NCBI GenBank assembly: GCA_904063045.1
Contig: CAJFCJ010000002.1
Coordinates: 4,497,645-4,561,644, forward strand
Reading direction: 5' to 3'
Length of the DNA stretch: 64,000 nucleotides
Source of the DNA: Dimorphilus gyrociliatus
Taxonomy: Eukaryota > Animalia > Annelida
Position 1 is the first letter of the stretch; each line of letters begins with the position of its first letter. Below the pieces are notes generated by a model, which was not told the DNA's origin, made no database searches, and saw nothing but the letters and a program-made list of their open reading frames with translations. Made by a program: the position numbers and the translations under genes. Shown piece by piece: positions 5,045 through 31,580 of the stretch.

Positions 5045-6040
5045 TTTGGGAGGTAATTTACTAAAATATAAAGAGTAATAGTTAATACATTTATCTATAG
5101 AAATACTAAAGCAAGTAATGTCTGGAATGCAGGTTCAATCAAATTGAAGGTAAGTACTATAGGATAAAGAAAAGTTCATACTGAGACAAGAGAGTTAATT
5201 TAATTCCGTATTGGCTTTTTTTTCCTGAGTGCTGTTTCATCGATTGAAAACGATGAAAAGTAATTAGAGTAAGATAGGGAGTACCTTTTTAAACAAACTA
5301 ACTATATTTCAACTATTTACAATAAACCTTTCAATACGAATAACACTATAAATATTGCTCTTAGCTGAAAGATTACCGAGAAATAGCATGAAAAGAAACG
5401 CCTGCGCTTAGAACACTGATCCATAAATAGTTTTGAATGGTATTTGGAATTCTTCTTAGTTAGGCCTACACCTGCGTAAGCTATCGACCTTAGCAAACAA
5501 AACAAAAAATTATTAAATTTTACAGAAAAATTGAATATAGATCAATATTAAGTCAATGAATTTTAAATAAGGATGGAAGAGAACGTCAGTAACCATACGG
5601 TACAGCATAAAAAAAAGTAAAAGTCCATCAATTATAAATATAGTTTCAATTAAAATCGTCTCCCTCTTTCCCTATCACGCTAACATAACTATTTAACTTA
5701 TTCACTTTTAATTTCTTTATCTAAACGTCTATTATTCGTATTAAAATTTCCTATTAACAATATTCAAACTGAATCTTTTTATTGTTACCATATACAATGT
5801 TAAAGAAAACACTCCATCTCATATTGTTTTTCGCTATCTAACTTAAGTATCTATTTACATCTATTCAAGTAATAAAAACTTTTTCTTATCTAACTATCAA
5901 ATTGATAAGATAAATAAATTGACAAGTTACCTTTAAAAGACACCAAACAAATGAATATATAGCATTTCAAGCCTTAAATTTCTGCTGAACAGTTTTAATA
6001 AGCGGTGTTTTTTAGTAGATTGATTTCTTCTTAGCAACGA

Positions 6041-6050: not shown

Positions 6051-6625
6051 AAAAAGAAAATAATAAAAATTCATTTATTTTAATATCTAACTAATTTTAA
6101 ATATATTTTTAATATTAAAAATTGCATAAAAAATTAATTATAGTATTTTATAAAAAAATATTTTACGACAGTAGAACTTGTTTTCGTAAACAAGTGATTC
6201 ATTGGGAAAACAAAGTTTGTCTGAGATGCACCTGTTAAATCTTTTATAGTTGAATATACATCGTGATGAAGGTTAGATAGATTATTTTAAATTAAATGCT
6301 TAAATTAATATGTGCTAAAATATAACAAATGTTGACTTAAAAACCGGCTAAAATGTTTGCTTTTTTCACCTTAAAAATTTTACTATTATGTACAGTATAT
6401 TAAATATCCTTGGCCTTTATCCTGCTTTAAATAGTATTGTTTTGTAAAAGAGAAAAGTTGCATAATCGCTTAATACAATTGATATTACTGTGAATATATA
6501 TTTAAAAGTTGTATTATATTATATTTAATTATTCTTAAAAAGCTTATAGATCTAAACTAATTCTTTAAAAGAGTAGCAAAATCATATTTGTGATACTTCG
6601 TCATGATCGATAATAGAGTAATTTT

Positions 6626-7339
6626 ATGAAAAATGTTCCTCTCATACAGAAAGAGAAAATGACGCATACTATTCGCACAAGTCTGGTTGAAGATGTTCGT
6701 CGGTTGCCTTATTTTCATGCAGATTTGGATAATAAAGCAGCGAAAAAAATATTATGTGATTTTATAAAAGAAGATGGATGTTTTCTTTTACGACCAAGCT
6801 CGTCAGAGAATCATGCGTGCACATTCTCGGTAACAAATCAAGGTTCTATTCTACACGTGAAACTCTTTAAAACTAATTCAAGTCAGTACCATCTAGACGT
6901 TGATCAAACGCCTTTCCCGTCTATTCAACGCTTAGTGGCACATTATTCAAACTCGGCTATTCCCTGTGAGAATTATACAAACATGAAGTTTATTTTCCCA
7001 ATAACATCTAAAAAACAAACAAAGCTCCAGAGAATTTCAGAATGTTCTATTGACACGGCAACTGTTAGCAGACCTTTGCCAGCACCGCCATTAGAGAACT
7101 TGGATAAAAAGGAGGAAGTAATAAAAGAGGAAGTTTGTGAATGTGGACTTCAAAAATCGAATCTTGCTGCTGGTTGGACTGTACACGTCAGCCATGAACC
7201 AGCAACAAGAGGATTATTATTTTTCCAACATAAAGATGGTTTAAAAGTTTGGGAGCTTCCAATAGATATTGTATCTCTCTTGACCAGCGAACAGAGAAAT
7301 TTCCTACAGGCAAATGGATATAGAGGAGCTTTAACATAA
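6626..7339 (+). CDS. Single-exon SH2-domain protein with a C-terminal WW-like segment
   Basis: 237-aa ORF: PYFHADLDNKAAKKIL...DGCFLLRPSS (FLLR, Arg intact)...FPSIQRLVAHY; Pro-rich linker SRPLPAPP; then AGWTVHVS...GLLFFQHKDGLKVWELP. Confidence 0.85.
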   Translation: MKNVPLIQKEKMTHTIRTSLVEDVRRLPYFHADLDNKAAKKILCDFIKEDGCFLLRPSSSENHACTFSVTNQGSILHVKLFKTNSSQYHLDVDQTPFPSIQRLVAHYSNSAIPCENYTNMKFIFPITSKKQTKLQRISECSIDTATVSRPLPAPPLENLDKKEEVIKEEVCECGLQKSNLAAGWTVHVSHEPATRGLLFFQHKDGLKVWELPIDIVSLLTSEQRNFLQANGYRGALT

Positions 7340-8341
7340 AGCGCCCGATTACTTTTAGAACGTTATATATTTATTCTAAACTTTATCTAAAACTTTGATA
7401 AGAATTTCAGGGGGGAAAAAAACAGTTCCTACAGATGTTCCTAATTAATTTAGTTGTTTAGCTTAAAAATTCTTTTTTCCAGTTGAGCCAAAACAAAAAT
7501 TTTGAAAAAAATTGCATTAAAAAACAAAGCCAAAAAAAATATTTAAGCAAAAACAGTAAAGGAAATTGTTTCTCTTTTTTTTCTCCTATACACTAAAAGT
7601 ACTGTATTACATTTACCTTTTGCTTTCTACTTTATGCTTTTATAATCCTATTTACAACCAAAGAATGAAACAAAGAGAGAAAAATTTCTCTTTCTTTTAT
7701 TATGTTCGCAAAATAAAACTGCAAAACTTAAACTAATAAAAATTTATATATTTTAAACAATTGTTCTTTTTTTTTTCTTTTCTTCTACTTTCTTTTTCTC
7801 TTTTTGTCATGTTTCTTTTATTCTTCCTTCTCTCTTTCTTCTCCCTCTCTATGTTAATTCCGAAAGTATTAAATAATATTCATTCATTCTGTATTATTCA
7901 ACAATTGAAAGAAAATTTTAATCAGTCATACTTTTTAATAAAGACATTTGCATATCAAAACAATTTGTAAAATTTCAACATCATTTCCTGACTGAATCAT
8001 AGTAAATTTGATGATTAATTAACAAAGAAAACGACAGTAGTATTATGAATTAATGATAAACTACGATCATTTTAAGGTTTATAGGTTACTAGGCAACAAG
8101 AGAGAGAGAGCGCCCATCCTGTTTTCTTTTTTTATCACGATTTCTAGAAAAAGCTGTTTACAATTTCCCTTTTTTCGTTTTTTAATGCGTAGTTGAGTGT
8201 TGATTTATTGCAGTTCGTTTATTTGATAATTAAATTAATACTAAATATTAATTCTTTTAAACGGTACCTACTTATTTACATAAATTTTTTCTATATAAAA
8301 TAGCACCGCAAAAATAATTTACTATTATGCTAAAGTATTTT

Positions 8342-24479: not shown

Positions 24480-27105
24480 ATGGCTCAAAATAATCAACTT
24501 TTACCAACAACTGCTCAGGAATTTGCTGATGCAAAGTACTGGCAAGACTTTTTCAAAAAACGTGGTGAATCTGCTTTTGAATGGTATATTTTGCATTTTC
24601 TTTATTTATTTCACTTTTTATTGGAATAAACTCCTAAATAGGTATGGTGAATATGCTCAATTATGCGGAATTATTCATAAATATATTAAGCCCAAAGATA
24701 ACGTTTTGATGATTGGTTGTGGAAATTCTGATTTGAGCGCCAACTTGTATGATGTAGGAATACAGAATATCATGAATATTGATATAAGCGATTTGGTAAT
24801 TAAAAATATGAGAACAAAGAATGAAAAACGAGAAAAAATGAAGTTTGTTAAGATGGATGTTACACAGGTTAACAATAAAACGATTAATATGCTTTTAAAA
24901 AATATATCTTAAATAACTAAGAACTATTTCCTGTTGTATTCAGTTAAGTTTTGAGGATGAAAGTTATTCAGTTGTTTTGGATAAGGGAACTCTAGATGCT
25001 CTCTTCACTGATACTAATGATAATACAGTTGAAGTTATTGAAAAAATGTATAATGAAATAGTCAGAGTGCTAAAACTTGGTGGACGATATATTTGTATAT
25101 CACTAGCTCAAGATCATATTGTTAAAAATATTGTTTCATTCTTTCATTCAAAGTAAGCCAGTTTATTCTAGTAGTAATATTATTTCTTTAAATAATAAAT
25201 CATCTTCAGGAATTGGCCAGTTCGTATTTGTAGAATTGAAACATCAGAAAATGACACTTTCGGATTACCAGTTTTTGCATTTGTTTTCACTAAATTCAAA
25301 ATGATGAATAATTTAAAGACACCATTAGAATTCTCTTCATTTTGTGATTCTATTCAAAGATTCGATTCACCTGAGAATTTAATTGAACAGGTCAAACAGC
25401 TTCAATATTACGCTTTTTTAATAAAGAAAGCTGAAAATTCAGAGTAAGACTATAGTTTATTACATATTGAAATTAAGCTAATAATTCTCATAATCCAGTG
25501 AAATAGCCGATGAACACGTCTCTATAAAGTTACACAATCAAGCTCATCAAGAACCACGTTATACAATTCATTTGGTTATTAATAGTGAATTTACTAAAGG
25601 ATTGTCAATGGGTGTGTTTATTGTACCAAGAGGACGAGAAATAGAATGGGTTTTTTCAACTTTCGAAGGTAGAAAGTTATTAGCGAAAAATGCAAACTGT
25701 CGTCGTTTACTTGTTGTAAGTATGTCGCGAAAGCATGAGTATGGAGGTCAGCATAACATTTATTTTATGTCTATCTATTAAATTTTTGATTTTTGAAATA
25801 TAGGTATGGATAGTATAAAAGCAGAATTATCGTCAAAGGTTATGGATCTTGCTCCTCATGGTATTAAGGACAAAGATGTACCTTTTCTTACACTTGGAGA
25901 CAATATTGATTGTCGAACGATTCGATATGAATTTAACAGCAAATTAAGTGGAACTGGTTTTGTAGAAGATGTTAGCTGCTCTGGAGATAACTATCGTCGA
26001 ATTATCTTTGAAACTTCACCAAATATGATTCAGTCAGAAGCCAAATTAGTATATAAAAGTAATATTTAAACAAATATGCAATATACACTAATTATTGACA
26101 AAATTATTCCAAGATGTGAGCAGAAAGAAGAAAGAATTGGTAATTGACAAATCTAGTTTAACTTGTTCATATCATCAATTTATGGTTGCGGGCTTAATTT
26201 TTATAGAAAACTTTCAACAAGTTTATAGTGAGAAATTTAACATAAATCTTAAAGTCAGATCTAAACTTGAAAGTAAATATTCTTATTAGAAAAAAGCGCT
26301 GAAAGAGATATTCCAACTCTGGTGGTTGGTTTCGGCGGAGGCTCCTTAACTTTATTTTTACACACGTTCTTTAAGAAGGTAAACTTGAACAAAATATTGA
26401 TAATTTTTTGTATTTTGATTATATAAACTATATGTACATATATATATATTTAGCTTCTCGTACTGGCTGTAGAGATTGATGAAACCCTACTAGAAATAGC
26501 ATTGAAATGGTTTGCCTTTCCTAAGGATGAATGTCAAGTTATTATAGATGATGGAGTTCATCAGGTGGAGGTTTTGGCAGAAAAGGGTAATTACTTCATG
26601 ACATAATCAAACTTTGTTATTGAAAGTAAAAATTACGTAACAGGTGAAAAACGAATGGTTATTATGTTGGATGCTGACGCTAAAGACATTAGCCAAGGCA
26701 TGACTGCTCCACCTGAGCAGTTTATAGAAGAAAATTTCTTAAAAAAATTATATAATATTCTTCATGAAGAAGGTAGCATGAAAATGATGAAATTTTTTCA
26801 TTTATATTCTCTTATTGTTAACAAACATTTATTCATCAGGTGTTATAATAATGAATATGGCATGTCGAAATAAAGATTTGAAAATTGAGGTTCTTTCCAA
26901 ACTAAAGAAGCAATTCCCATCTGTATTTACTGTTCCAATTGATCAAGAAATTAATGAAATTATTTATTGTAAAAAGCAAAAGTGCCAATTTTCAGAAGAA
27001 TATTGTAAGAAGGAATTAGCAGCCTTAAATTCAATACTATTAGAAACACCTGCAAAGAATAATTTGAGTGTATCGCAATTGCCAAATACTTTAGTTGCTG
27101 TGTAG
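24480..27105 (+). CDS. METTL13: eEF1A lysine and N-terminal methyltransferase (two MTase domains)
   Basis: LLPTTAQEFADAKYWQDFFKKRGESAFEW|YGEY, LMIGCGNS, LDKGTLDAL, FIVPRGREIEWVFST.EGR, and a second domain with LVVGFGGGSL. Confidence 0.93.
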
Positions 27106-27354
27106 AAATATAACTTTACGCTAACATTTCAAATTTGATTACTTGTGGTTTTTGAAAGCAAACTATACATTTACTCGAAAACAAATAAACATTGGAGGTT
27201 AGAATTTGAATTTTATTGGTTAAAGGTTTTTTCTTTTTATTTTTTATATAAAAGTTTGACTTGTCTTTTTAAAGAAACGAGCTTAAAGTTATATAACAAT
27301 CGGAATATTTCGCCGTTTACGAGAGCCCGTATGCTTTTGTCGTAAATATTATTA

Positions 27355-27366
27355 GCGCGCATGCGT
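27355..27366. promoter_or_regulatory. NRF1-like motif (GCGCGCATGCGT) upstream of the SR gene
   Basis: GC-rich GCGCATGCG core in AT-rich DNA just before a spliced 5' UTR exon (donor at about 27453). Confidence 0.4.
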
Positions 27367-27553
27367 AGTGAATAGCCTGTATCCGGTATAAGAAGCATTT
27401 GACGCTCTGATTTTTTTAAATATTTACTTCATATATCGACCAAACAGCAATCGTAAGTTATGCTCAATATATTATGGGTTCAGAGACCAATAATGTTTTT
27501 AGCTATTAATGGGATATGATAACAAAGGCTGATAATCAATATACTTCAGGTGA

Positions 27554-29908
27554 ATGGCGGACAAGCGGTATAGAAGTAGGTCGCGTTCATCTTCTTTTAG
27601 ACGCCGCAGAAGGTCAAGGTCGTCGGAATCGCGAACACCTAGCCCAACAGTGACGAGGAAAAGAGGTTATGGAGGAGGTAAATGGAAAATTTTAAATAAG
27701 CAAAGTTTCGTATGATATCGGTGCCGAGGATCAGTAAGACAACGAAAGAACTAAACAAATAGGGAGTGTAAAAATGTTAAGGCTTGAAGACAAACTACTG
27801 TCATTAAACAGCATATTATGCACCTCTGTAGCAACCGTCTATTTAAGCCTTCAATACTTTTAACGAATGCTTCTACATAAAAATTAAGCAGAATTTGGAT
27901 TTGGTTCTTGAATGTCTTATTTTTAATAACTATTTGTTGATTCTCATCTGGCAAAAAGATTCGAGAGAAGAAATAGTAATATGGAACTATTATTTCTCTC
28001 AACAATAAGAACCATCAGAGATCTTGGTTAACATGTTTGATATCAAAAGGGGCAATATAGCAAACAGATGTACTTTTGGTTATATTAATAAAGAAGTACT
28101 ATTTCTTACTAGGAGGGGGTGGAGGCGGCGGTGGACGTTTTTACGACGATCGACATTACGATAGAAGAAATAACTATCGCCGAAATGATAGAGGTGGAGG
28201 CGGAAGAGGCTACGATCGTTGGGAGGGCGGAGATGATCCATCGGAAGTCGGCTATAGAGTTCATATTGGAGATGTCGTAAAAAAGACTACTCAGGAGCAA
28301 ATAGAAGAAAAATTTAGTAAATTCGGACACATTAGAGACGTTTTTCTGGCTAATACCTTTCCTCAATTTGCTATTGTAAGCTATGAGGAAAAACTAGATG
28401 CTGAAGATGCTATTAGAGAAATGGATGGAAAGTAAGACGCTTGTGTAGCATTTAGTTTTACCAAAACATTAACTTTTGGCATTACAGCTTTTTCAATGGA
28501 TCGAAGATATCTGTATCATTTGCAAGACCGAGAACAAGACCAAGAGGTAATAGAAGACCCCCTAGTTCTTCGTCTTGTTATAAATGTGGTAGAACGGGCC
28601 ATTTCGCAAGAGAATGCAGTCGTGATCCTGGAGAATATATAAACCCTGGTGACGACAGAGACTTCAATAGAGGTCGAGATAGAAGTCGCGACCGTGATAG
28701 AGACAGAGACAGAGACAGAGACGGGTGGAGAGATAGGAAGTATGTATAAGTAAATATTTCGACTTCGATACTTAACATATGTTCAGGAATTTTTCGTACA
28801 GATCGGATAGATATGGTGGCGGAGGTGGCGGAGGCGGCGGTGGCGGAGGAGGAGGAGGAGGAGGAGGCGGTGGCGGCAGTCGACTTTCATGCTATAGATG
28901 TGGAAAGCCAGGACATTTTGCTCGAGACTGTGACAAACCGATTGATTCGATTAGAAGGTAAAAGACTTAAGAGGAAATAATTTTTCTCAGGAATCGAGTT
29001 TCTCTATTTTTTTCTTTCCGCTAAAAAAAACAATGGCCCAAGAGGGAAAACTACCATTTGATTAGGAAACGGATTGTATCCTTCGATATTATTTTATAAT
29101 GTTGTTTACTAATTTCTAGGCATATTCTTCGTGGCTAGAAAACATAATCTTTTTGTTCCGCTGGCGCACATTGGGTCTCGTATTTTGGTGTTAAAGTTTT
29201 AAGCAAAAATTTAATCAATGGTAGTTAACAAAAATTTGGCGAAAAAAATCGCTGGCTTATTGGTTATAGGCGTGTGTGAGAAAGTCTTGGCAAATTTTGG
29301 GTGCTTGGGTGCGGTTGATTAATGTCTAGTAATGTCACGCAATATTGGTTTGTCGCGTAGTTGTTAAACTGAAAAAAACAATTGGTAAGGAAAATATTCT
29401 ATGAATATAGAGTAGATTATATTTTTTCAGTACGTTATTTTTTTCGTTCGCCACTTATAAAATAGCGACTATTCATCCTCATGAGGTTGGATCAACTGTG
29501 GCTGGATAATTTGAAAATGCGTTTTTTTTCGCAACGATATCTACTTTTTATAGTGTCTGTGGATGTCGTTCTTACGATTTTGGTCTCATTCTAAATCTCA
29601 ATCGGCCGCCCTTGTTTTTTCCAGCCAACTGTTTGCTTTGGCATAATGATTAATTCATTTACTTTCATTTTAAGACGAAGGTCAAGATCGTATTCGAGCT
29701 CATTGGATCGTAAGAAGAGGTCTAGATCGAGATCTAGCGTGTCCCCTTTCAACAAAAGGTAAATAACACAAGATTTAATTGAATGTTGATGAAAATTTAC
29801 TGACTATTTACTCTTGATAGGAAGAGAAGTTTCGATGGAGATAGAGATGATAAATTTAAGAGACATAGAGATTCTTACAGCAAATCGCCAGAAAAAGAAC
29901 GCATTTAA
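27554..29908 (+). CDS. SRSF7/9G8-like SR protein: RS + Gly/Arg-rich + RRM + two CCHC knuckles + RS
   Basis: Exons 27554-27677, 28113-28431, 28488-28739, 28787/28802-28957, 29675-29758 and 29821-29908 join in frame. RRM ends DAEDAIREMDG; knuckles CYKCGRTGHFAREC and CYRCGKPGHFARDC. Confidence 0.85.
28815..28877 (+). repeat. (GGN)21 coding repeat, poly-glycine
   Basis: 21 consecutive Gly codons mixing GGT/GGC/GGA between the two zinc knuckles. Confidence 0.9.
29120..29485 (+). other. Candidate stop-containing (poison) cassette exons inside the 717-nt intron 28958-29674 of the SR gene
   Basis: AG/GT-bounded segments 29120-29220, 29270-29384 and 29431-29485. The first two give in-frame stops within 3-6 codons; the third is 55 nt (frameshift). 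Confidence 0.6.
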
Positions 29909-30444
29909 GCTGTTTTATAATCAGTTTGATGTTGTTTCTTGTTTAATTTGTATGTATCACGATAATATTCGATGCAAAATTAAGTTTCGAAATTTTTGTG
30001 AAGAATGGTTTGTTGATCGTTTACAAGCAGATTTTCCATGGAATGCGATTTGTTGTTGTTATAGATTATATTATAGTGTGTGTTGCCTGTTTAAAAGTCT
30101 TATTTTTTTCATTAAAACTTAACGCAATAGATGAAATAACTGCTTTTTTTCATAGATTTATCTTGCATGTGAATTAATTGATTTTTTTTTAATGTATTTA
30201 ATAAAAACTTGTTTCTTGTCATTGGGAATGTATCAATAATTATACAACTTGAACAAACTAATAAATTAGTCAATTTAAAAATCGGTTATATTTGTATTTT
30301 TTTAAACTGAATTCTCCATTCGCTTTCTTTAACTAACTTCACTAATTATTGCAATTTTTTCAAGGCTGACACTGTAGGCCTTTGTGATATCATAACTGTA
30401 TTTAAAATTCTAAAAAAAACAAAAATTAGACGACATTTAAGGAA

Positions 30445-31580
30445 ATGTTTCATAAGGCTTTTATTCTTTTACATTTATTAACCAGGGGTTCTAGTATTGT
30501 TCGTCTATTTGGGGAAGATGAAAAACCATCAACTTTGTTTGTAAATGTAAATATAGCATTATAAATATTTCTAACAAAAAAAAAGATTATGTATATCTCT
30601 ATACAGTATATTGATATCTGTATTTTATATTTTTATATATAATAACTATATTAAGTAAATATAACTTTGATTTCAATAAAGACAAACTTATCTTCTTTAA
30701 GTTAAAAACAAATAAAAAAAAACAGTGGCATACATCGTTAATTGCAGGAACTATCGAAATCAACATTTTGTTTAGAGACGAAAGAATTCATAGAAGGATC
30801 ATCCGATAGAATTTTAGAAATGTTAAATGGACAAGTACTTGATTGCATTCAACTAAATTCCACGATTGATGTCAATAAACAGAATTGTACTGAATTCTTT
30901 TCATCTAATTTATCACAAAAAAGATCTTTATTGCATTTTGTTTGTAAATTTCCCCAAAATGTATCATACCGAATATTTTTGATGATATCACCTACGAATA
31001 AGAAATCATTAGCTAACCCATTTTGTGATTCTTCCCTATATTTCCCTTCGCAGGGACACATAAGAATAGGCTATTGTTGTATAAAGTTATTCGAAAACAT
31101 AACTTTTAATTTTGAATGTTCAAAATTTGAGTCACAAGAATATCCCAATGTTCAATTGCTACAGGTATCTTAAAGAAATTATTCTTTTTGTATATTGATC
31201 AAACGTTCAAATACATAATTCAATAGGTTGAAGAAGAGACATCTGGAGAATTTACAAAGGATTTACAAAGTCAAACGCAATTTACGACTATTCAAACTGA
31301 TATTGAAAATCTTAGTGAAAATATAACTGGTAAGAGAAATGATGGAAAAACCACCAAATCTACTAAATATAAGTATATTATCAGCGAAAATTCTATAGAT
31401 AAGAAACTCAGTGCTAAACTCGTCGGATTTGCTATTGGAGGGTCTTTAGGACTACCAATTTTAATTCTGATAATTATCGTAACTATTCGAGTTGTAAGGA
31501 AGAGAAAAAGATCTTTTCACAGAGTTGAAAAATTAACAAGAAATGTAAGAGATTACGATAATGATTATATCTATGAATAG
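30445..31580 (+). CDS. Orphan type I membrane protein (3 exons)
   Basis: Exons 30445-30540, 30748-31164 and 31227-31580 join in phase 0. Signal-like N-terminus, Cys-containing ectodomain, Thr-rich stalk, TM (LVGFAIGGSLGLPILILIIIVTI), basic stop-transfer RVVRKRKR, tail DYDNDYIYE*. Confidence 0.7.

Follow-up and report, generated by a model that had tools for sequence, protein, structure and literature searches.

The window analyzed in this study is a stretch of 64,000 nucleotides (nt) from the genome of the annelid Dimorphilus gyrociliatus (contig CAJFCJ010000002.1, positions 4,497,645 to 4,561,644 of the forward strand). Its plus strand carries a gene of the SR (serine/arginine-rich) type, whose layout, RS – RRM – two CCHC knuckles – RS, was recognized from the sequence, its translations, Pfam matches and RNA-derived contigs. 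A preliminary description of the locus had proposed that a long intron of this gene contains a chain of poison exons, i.e. exons that introduce a premature stop codon. We found that this 717-nt intron is real and hosts a genuine, conserved cassette exon, which is a single exon of 265 nt rather than a chain.

The gene model was built from the same four sources, with the exons searched singly and joined only in order to read the frames. The RNA data comprised assembled contigs of four sequencing runs (X14, X3, X2 and X1), which were placed on positions 27000–30600 of the window (3,601 letters). The contigs of run X14 are 100% identical to the window and lack the introns of 97, 56 and 62 nt, which identifies this run as RNA. 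X3 is derived from a related taxon (approx. 93% identical to the window in exons), and X1 is a marine metatranscriptome. Contig depth was not taken as a measure of isoform ratio. The gene is composed of the following parts, all on the plus strand:

~27419–27452: exon 1, 5′ and non-coding, start approximate; joint 27452>27550 (GT..AG) in X14 and X3 contigs
27453–27549: intron of 97 nt, spliced out in X14
27550–27677: exon 2, with the ATG at 27554 and the N-terminal RS-rich region MADKRYRSRSRS... (translation; same N-terminus in the paralogue on contig C3 and in family members)
27678–28112: intron of 435 nt, kept in RNA contigs; splice deduced from the frame and the paralogue
28113–28431: exon 3, Gly/Arg-rich (RGG-like) stretch and most of the RRM (Pfam RRM_1 in 28112–28429, E 8e-11); joint 28431>28488 in contigs
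28432–28487: intron of 56 nt, spliced out in X14
28488–28739: exon 4, remainder of the RRM, the ARPRTR motif, the first CCHC knuckle and RD repeats (Pfam zf-CCHC in 28489–28737, E 8e-8)
28740–28786 or 28740–28801: intron of 47 or 62 nt, with two acceptors
28787 or 28802–28957: exon 5, Gly run and second CCHC knuckle (Pfam zf-CCHC in 28803–28955, E 2e-9)
28958–29674: host intron of 717 nt, GT..AG, phase 2 in an Arg codon (AG/A) at the knuckle/RS-domain boundary; joint 28957>29675 in X1
29675–29758: exon 6, first RS-domain exon (RRSRSYSSS...; translation); contig joint placed 29756>29819
29759–29820: intron of 62 nt, spliced out in X14
29821–30553: last exon, with the remaining RS tail, the TAA stop (29906–29908) and the 3′ untranslated region (translation; X14 contig 9)

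The two acceptors of the second-knuckle exon (28787 and 28802) are in frame and lie 15 nt apart; the upstream one adds N-F-S-Y-R, and the contigs skip this repeat-rich part. The genome of D. gyrociliatus measures 73.8 Mb, its introns have a median length of 66 bp, and trans-splicing is absent (PMC7854359). The 717-nt intron was correctly described as standing amid short neighbours, which measure 56, 47 or 62, and 62 nt.

In order to determine how this intron is spliced, we examined all contigs that enter it. The parts distinguished within the intron (plus strand) are:

29023–29119: conserved upstream flank, with branch-point-like TACTAAT and acceptor TTTCTAG, inside the 97.8%-identical X3 piece 29023–29381
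29120–29384: poison cassette exon of 265 nt; joints 28957>29120 and 29384>29675 in X14; homologous cassette in the C3 paralogue
29136–29138: in-frame TAG, six codons into the cassette (frame check)
29385–29674: downstream sub-intron, less conserved, with weak TTTTAAG acceptor, kept in some contigs (X14 contig 8, X3 contig 22)

In X14 contig 7 (295 nt), position 28957 is spliced straight to 29120 and the sequence continues unbroken to 29384; 29118–29384 is covered without a gap. A 59-nt contig of the same run joins 29384 straight to 29675, both cassette joints being of the GT..AG type, and the equivalent donor joint to 29675 is present in X3 with two letters changed. The constitutive (skipping) joint 28957>29675 was found in an X1 contig. 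The cassette is thus an internal GT..AG exon that is both included (X14; donor joint also in X3) and skipped (X1). Further contigs retain its flanks: 28932–29245 (X1), about 28964–29381 (X3) and 29355–29703 (X14 contig 8 and X3 contig 22).

When the 717-nt intron was filtered for strong splice sites, the acceptors at 29119 and 29624 were left, along with the donor at 29385 and a GTGAG in a TG-rich stretch. The acceptor and donor of the cassette are therefore the sole strong internal sites of the intron besides the unused acceptor at 29624.

This unused acceptor (TTGTTTTTTCCAG/) is strong and precedes the weak constitutive acceptor TTTTAAG/ at 29674 by 50 nt; an exon beginning there would be 50 nt longer and would reach a TAA. 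The yeast-like branch-point consensus TACTAAT is located 8–10 nt before the AG of the cassette (29105–29119) and is kept in both paralogues (minus strand, approx. 3885–3871 of the C3 region). For an alternative exon, this branch point is unusually strong.

The preliminary description had subdivided the intron by AG/GT pairs into a series of small poison exons, two or three in number (29120–29220, 29270–29384 and 29431–29485) separated by mini-introns of normal size (49 and 46 nt). The listed AG/GT sites do exist, with the frames that were given for them (AGG CAT ATT CTT CGT GGC TAG, AGG CGT GTG TGA and a 55-nt frameshift), and the second acceptor block (TAGGC.T.TGTGA) is kept in the C3 paralogue, where a possible 46-nt GT..AG unit is found at the same place. 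However, the pairs occur at chance density (435 AG..GT segments of 40–300 nt in the intron versus 571 ± 107 in shuffles) and carry no signal, the donors GTAGTT and GTTGGA are weak, and no contig has a joint at 29220, 29270, 29431 or 29485. Since X14 contig 7 is unbroken across the 49-nt mini-intron (29221–29269) and the donor at 29385 goes directly to 29675, the contigs define one 265-nt exon with retained flanks. Among the proposed internal sites, the first acceptor (29119/29120) and the second donor (29384/29385) are thus used in RNA, and the others have no contig joints. A further acceptor, suggested at 28990, would give an intron of 32 nt, and the contigs read straight through it. A chain of exons is, in our judgement, very improbable.

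The 717-nt intron is neither a repeat nor a transposon and is present in a single copy in the genome. A search of Rfam with positions 27000–31000 at a lax threshold returned only a chance match to snoU61, inside the RRM exon. The fold of the cassette RNA was not unusual (z = 0.26), and no open reading frame (ORF) of more than 54 amino acids was found on either strand of the intron.

Inclusion of the cassette reads R-H-I-L-R-G-stop. The TAG precedes the 29384/29675 junction by 246 nt, i.e. by more than the 50–55 nt by which a premature stop should lie upstream of an exon junction, and a further junction (29758/29821) is located downstream. A stop well upstream of exon junctions is the classical configuration for nonsense-mediated decay (NMD), and both UPF1 and UPF3 are encoded in the genome. 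The length of the cassette equals 1 modulo 3 (a +1 frame shift), and it contains stops in every frame. In this respect the preliminary description was right: together with the X14 joints, the TAG establishes that the intron holds a stop-bearing alternative exon which is used in RNA. As read from the frames, the included form would encode a protein that extends from the N-terminal RS region through the RRM and both knuckles but lacks the C-terminal RS domain. A split-ORF arrangement as in SRSF7, with a second ORF for the RS half, was ruled out, since the RS frame is interrupted by a TGA formed at the 29384/29675 junction and contains no ATG further downstream.

The conservation of the cassette was assessed at two levels, between the window and X3 and between the window and the C3 paralogue. 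For the former, identities were taken from aligned contig pieces, and Fisher tests were performed on the counts of differences. The pieces compared (plus strand) were:

29023–29381: cassette and 97 nt upstream, 8 differences in 359 (97.8%)
28206–28431: coding exon piece, 16 differences in 226 (92.9%)
28489–28685: coding exon piece, 14 differences in 197 (92.9%)
29355–29703: downstream sub-intron piece, 27 differences and 13 gap positions in 349 (88.5%)
27550–28096: 5′ region, 47 differences in 547 (91.4%)

The region of the cassette is better conserved than the coding exons (8/359 versus 30/423 differences, Fisher p = 0.0014) and than the downstream sub-intron (8/359 versus 40/349, Fisher p = 7e-7).

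The C3 paralogue (C3 1357000–1363600, minus strand), whose RRM is 73% identical to that of the window gene in protein, has the order RS-RRM-knuckle-knuckle-RS with a long RD-rich tail. After its second knuckle exon there is an intron of 563 nt, at the same codon and phase as the 717-nt intron. A 228-nt unit of this intron, bounded by TTTCTAG/ and /GTAAGA, aligns with the window cassette:

C3 1360641–1360868, minus strand: cassette of the C3 paralogue, 228 nt, stop-carrying (alignment to the window cassette)

Local alignment of the two whole introns gave a score of 43 (13.6 ± 1.5 in shuffles, z = 19.5) and was confined to 29085–29352 of the window, and the third codon positions of the RRM exons of the two genes are only 47% identical. 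The blocks common to both cassettes are TTTACTAAT (branch-point-like), TTCTAGGCAT, TGGCTAGAAAA, TAGGC.T.TGTGA, GGTTGATTA, AATGTC...CAATA.TGGTTTG and the donor. G/T-rich words (TTGG, TGGC and TGGT) reach 5–12 times the window background in both cassettes. The conservation that the preliminary description had named as a check is thereby borne out for the exon itself, which is better conserved than the coding sequence. Cassette similarity was absent from the third family member of this genome (on contig C13), from its canonical SRSF3/7-like genes and from Bugula and Seison, and none was found outside the two paralogues; scans of metagenomes with two conserved cassette blocks gave no matches. The C3 paralogue has a further intron, of about 500 nt, between its two knuckle exons.

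Such conservation could also be expected if the block were mainly an element acting at the level of DNA, e.g. an intronic enhancer, with the splicing being incidental, and 944 peaks of ATAC (assay for transposase-accessible chromatin) signal are indeed located in unusually long introns of D. gyrociliatus (PMC7854359). However, the high conservation stops exactly at the used donor and takes in the branch point, the acceptor and the donor; moreover, the same junctions are used in two taxa, and the splice sites are kept in the paralogue. An explanation of this kind is, in our opinion, extremely unlikely.

The preliminary description had placed the intron at the position of the SRSF7 autoregulatory intron. 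The cassette does lie between the RNA-binding module and the RS domain, as does the poison exon of SRSF7 (PMC9022966), but a simple orthology with SRSF7 is not supported by the RRM identities and the phylogenetic analysis. The RRMs of SRSF3, SRSF7 and SRSF1 from the PDB all match the RRM of the window gene at about 35 bits only, its identity to canonical SRSF3/7-type RRMs is 37–44%, and a library-wide HMMER search with the RRM exon revealed nothing above 55% identity.

The nearest single-RRM proteins, exemplified by those of Seison nebaliae (KAI3382570) and Bugula neritina (KAF6030259), share an N-terminal RS stretch, RNP2 of the form G(Y/F)R(V/L)H, RNP1 NPPCFAF and ARPRTRGR followed by one CCHC knuckle. 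A word search placed this family, usually annotated as "SRSF7-like", in Saccoglossus, Ptychodera, Mytilus, Mya, Owenia, cephalopods, termites, orthopterans and Brachionus. As revealed by alignments, sequences and the tree, the window gene has the N-terminal RS region, the G(Y/F)R(V/L)H RNP2, ARPR(T)R, a CCHC knuckle and the C-terminal RS region of this subfamily, on a long branch and with a divergent RNP1 (NTFPQFAIV versus NPPCFAFV of the subfamily). It lacks the canonical RRM (CKVYVGxL ... RNPPGFAFVEFED) that groups with SRSF3/7. In a maximum-likelihood tree computed from 12 RRMs (excluding that of the C13 gene, which is split by an intron), the canonical SRSF3/7-type RRMs were separated from the SRSF7-like family with a support of 91/95, and the window gene and its paralogue formed a long branch on the side of the family. 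Besides the C13 member, the same genome contains two canonical SRSF3/7-like genes, one on contig C19 and the other elsewhere on contig C2.

Because of the weak RRM identity, the split in the tree and the presence of these two closer canonical genes in the genome, the sequence comparisons indicate that the window gene is SRSF7-like in a loose sense and not the closest SRSF3/7 orthologue. The window gene has two CCHC knuckles; the other members of the subfamily have one, with the motif (Y/F)DPN.RCYQCGE.GH, which probably resembles the knuckle region of SRSF7. A second knuckle is unusual among animals and, since the family members of other animals have a single one, was probably added in this lineage.

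Six family genes have a long intron at the knuckle/RS boundary:

window gene: 717 nt, phase 2, AG/A
Dimorphilus, contig C3: 563 nt, phase 2, AG/A
Dimorphilus, contig C13: 968 nt, same domain boundary (position only)
Brachionus calyciflorus: 373 nt (locus 5469–5841), phase 2, AG/A; the only intron of the gene
bioreactor metagenome eukaryote: 1813 nt (locus 599–2411), phase 2, AG/A; the only intron seen
Bugula neritina: about 1.87 kb (locus about 6147–8019), phase 2, AG/A; RS exons annotated as a separate gene

All five introns that were read at the junction split an Arg codon (AG/A) at the start of the RS domain. The AAG acceptor of the constitutive RS exon is also present in the C3 paralogue and in Brachionus. 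The canonical SRSF3/7-like gene on contig C19 contains a phase-2 intron of 522 nt in an Arg codon right before RSRSYERRR (C19 1199765–1200286), where its RS domain starts and at the position that the 717-nt intron has in the window gene. The middle of this intron is pyrimidine- and C-rich (CTTCATCCGCCAACTACTTCGTCTGTCC), and the intron is a candidate for an SRSF3-type poison exon.

A bolder interpretation of this distribution regards the long phase-2 knuckle/RS intron as a regulatory intron of ancient origin that belongs to the SRSF3/7-type clade as a whole. It would be homologous to the poison-exon intron of vertebrate SRSF7/SRSF3 and would have retained its length in the compact genomes of annelids, rotifers and bryozoans, even where no other intron is left in the gene. 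In Dimorphilus, inclusion would then be the default (gene "off"), since the cassette has a strong acceptor and a consensus branch point and the RS exon a weak AAG acceptor; productive skipping would be the regulated step, and the retained 435-nt intron a second unproductive module. We put this forward tentatively, as a conjecture that is more doubtful than probable.

The main rival explanation of the cassette is a truncation switch instead of decay, in which a stable cassette-containing mRNA would yield an RS-RRM-2×knuckle protein that lacks the C-terminal RS domain and has its own, possibly antagonistic, function. X14 assembled included joints only, with contigs of the included form beside those of constitutive exons, and SRSF7 makes a half-protein of this kind (PMC9022966). 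Moreover, several annotated products of relatives end just past the knuckle with short non-RS tails (..RSRLV, ..RSRLLMVLYG, ..RSRKVVLVKCVRSKSG..), namely those of Owenia fusiformis (two isoforms), Mytilus californianus X4, M. edulis and Pomacea X2; judged from the annotated sequences, these tails fit alternative splicing at the knuckle/RS boundary, and isoforms with a poison exon or a retained intron there would be expected to end in this way. On the other hand, the stop is followed by two junctions, as in a classical NMD target, the RS half cannot be translated from an ORF of its own, and contig depth does not allow the isoforms to be ranked. A switch based on truncation seems to us rather unlikely to be the principal role of the cassette, although truncation and decay are not mutually exclusive.

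The gene has a second long intron of 435 nt (27678–28112), which, like the N-terminal RS exon, went unmentioned in the preliminary description. It is retained in otherwise spliced contigs of three runs (X14 contig 6, X3 contig 18 and X2 contig 13); X14 contig 6, for instance, is unbroken over 27550–28431 with the 97- and 56-nt introns removed. Retention ends the ORF after 53 amino acids (MADKRYRSRS...KQSFV). The splice 27677>28113 was present in no contig of the four runs. At the corresponding place, the C3 paralogue has an intron of only 66 nt. A second unproductive route therefore exists in the same gene, in the form of the retained 435-nt intron.

On balance, we are fairly confident that the locus represents a case of regulated unproductive splicing via one conserved 265-nt cassette, in which skipping or inclusion, together with intron retention, sets the level of the full-length protein. 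Upon inclusion, the TAG would either leave an RNA-binding half without the C-terminal RS domain or, because two exon junctions follow the stop, cause the message to be removed by NMD. The amount of full-length protein would be tuned by the ratio of skipping to inclusion and by retention of the 435-nt intron and of the sub-introns on either side of the cassette. The likeliest driver would be negative feedback by the protein itself, its paralogue or other SR proteins, the first two being suggested by analogy with SRSF3, SRSF7 and atRSZ33 (PMC4379411, PMC9022966, PMC1636356). With good cassette sites and a consensus branch point opposed to the weak TTTTAAG of the RS exon, the choice appears well placed for trans-acting control.

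Several points weigh against this model. (i) Decay of the included form by NMD, and autoregulation, are inferred. (ii) X14 yielded included and retained forms, the skipping joint not being among its contigs, and this agrees with an abundant, stable included mRNA no less well than with a rapidly degraded one; the included mRNA may therefore be stable and code for a truncated protein. (iii) The RNA contigs show that a form exists, which is distinct from isoform ratios, the strand or the absence of minor isoforms. (iv) The conserved GGCTAGAAAA (GGCTAG) block provides the in-frame stop in the window gene and is out of frame in the C3 paralogue, where the first stop is a TAA 33 codons into the cassette; selection therefore acts on the RNA sequence and not on this one stop codon. 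(v) No own-binding motif was identified, and under a dinucleotide-aware null no 5-mer was enriched in common across five family introns (all six but that of Bugula), for which reason the idea of a shared binding motif was dropped.

It is in vertebrates that the poison exons of SR genes have become best known, as ultraconserved elements; how old they are outside the SRSF5 group is unclear. In vertebrate SRSF7, a poison cassette exon splits the RNA-binding part from the RS domain (Konigs et al. 2020, as summarized in PMC9022966). The exon described here resembles it in position and architecture, being a stop-bearing cassette in the intron that parts the RRM and the CCHC knuckle from the RS domain, and also in the retention of flanking intron pieces and the high conservation of the element. 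The differences are that the window gene belongs to another subfamily (N-terminal RS, two knuckles, NTFPQFAIV in place of NPPGFAFVEF) and that a re-initiation ORF for the RS half is impossible here.

Like the ultraconserved poison exons known from SR genes in general (Lareau et al. 2007; Ni et al. 2007; Lareau & Brenner 2015, PMC4379411), the exon is a non-coding cassette of a splicing-factor gene that carries a premature stop and exceeds the coding exons in conservation. In the present case, however, conservation was observed between two close taxa and between two paralogues of one annelid, not across classes, and the host genome is compact, as its median intron indicates. The combination of an RRM, two Zn knuckles and an RS domain is also found in the plant RS2Z proteins (atRSZ33; PMC1636356), whose genes have one unusually long, alternatively spliced intron, with alternative sites that are better conserved than the constitutive ones and with the event common to paralogue pairs (PMC1636356). 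Unlike in the window gene, the long intron of RS2Z lies inside the RRM, between RNP2 and RNP1 (PMC1636356). RS2Z has been described as plant-specific (PMC1636356), and we claim no orthology with the window gene.

The poison exon of the window gene is thus a familiar type of self-limiting switch, found here in a new gene family. It constitutes an RNA-supported poison exon, better conserved than coding sequence, in a spiralian with a compact genome, and its host gene belongs to an SRSF7-like subfamily that has received little study and is also represented in hemichordates, molluscs, insects and rotifers. The place of the host intron is kept in the six genes, its phase in the five that were read, and its unusual length across three phyla; with place, phase and length shared in this way, the origin of the feedback intron of the SRSF3/7 type becomes directly testable by comparison of a few loci and RNA-seq sets. 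The case also helps to explain the survival of a few long introns under genome compaction.

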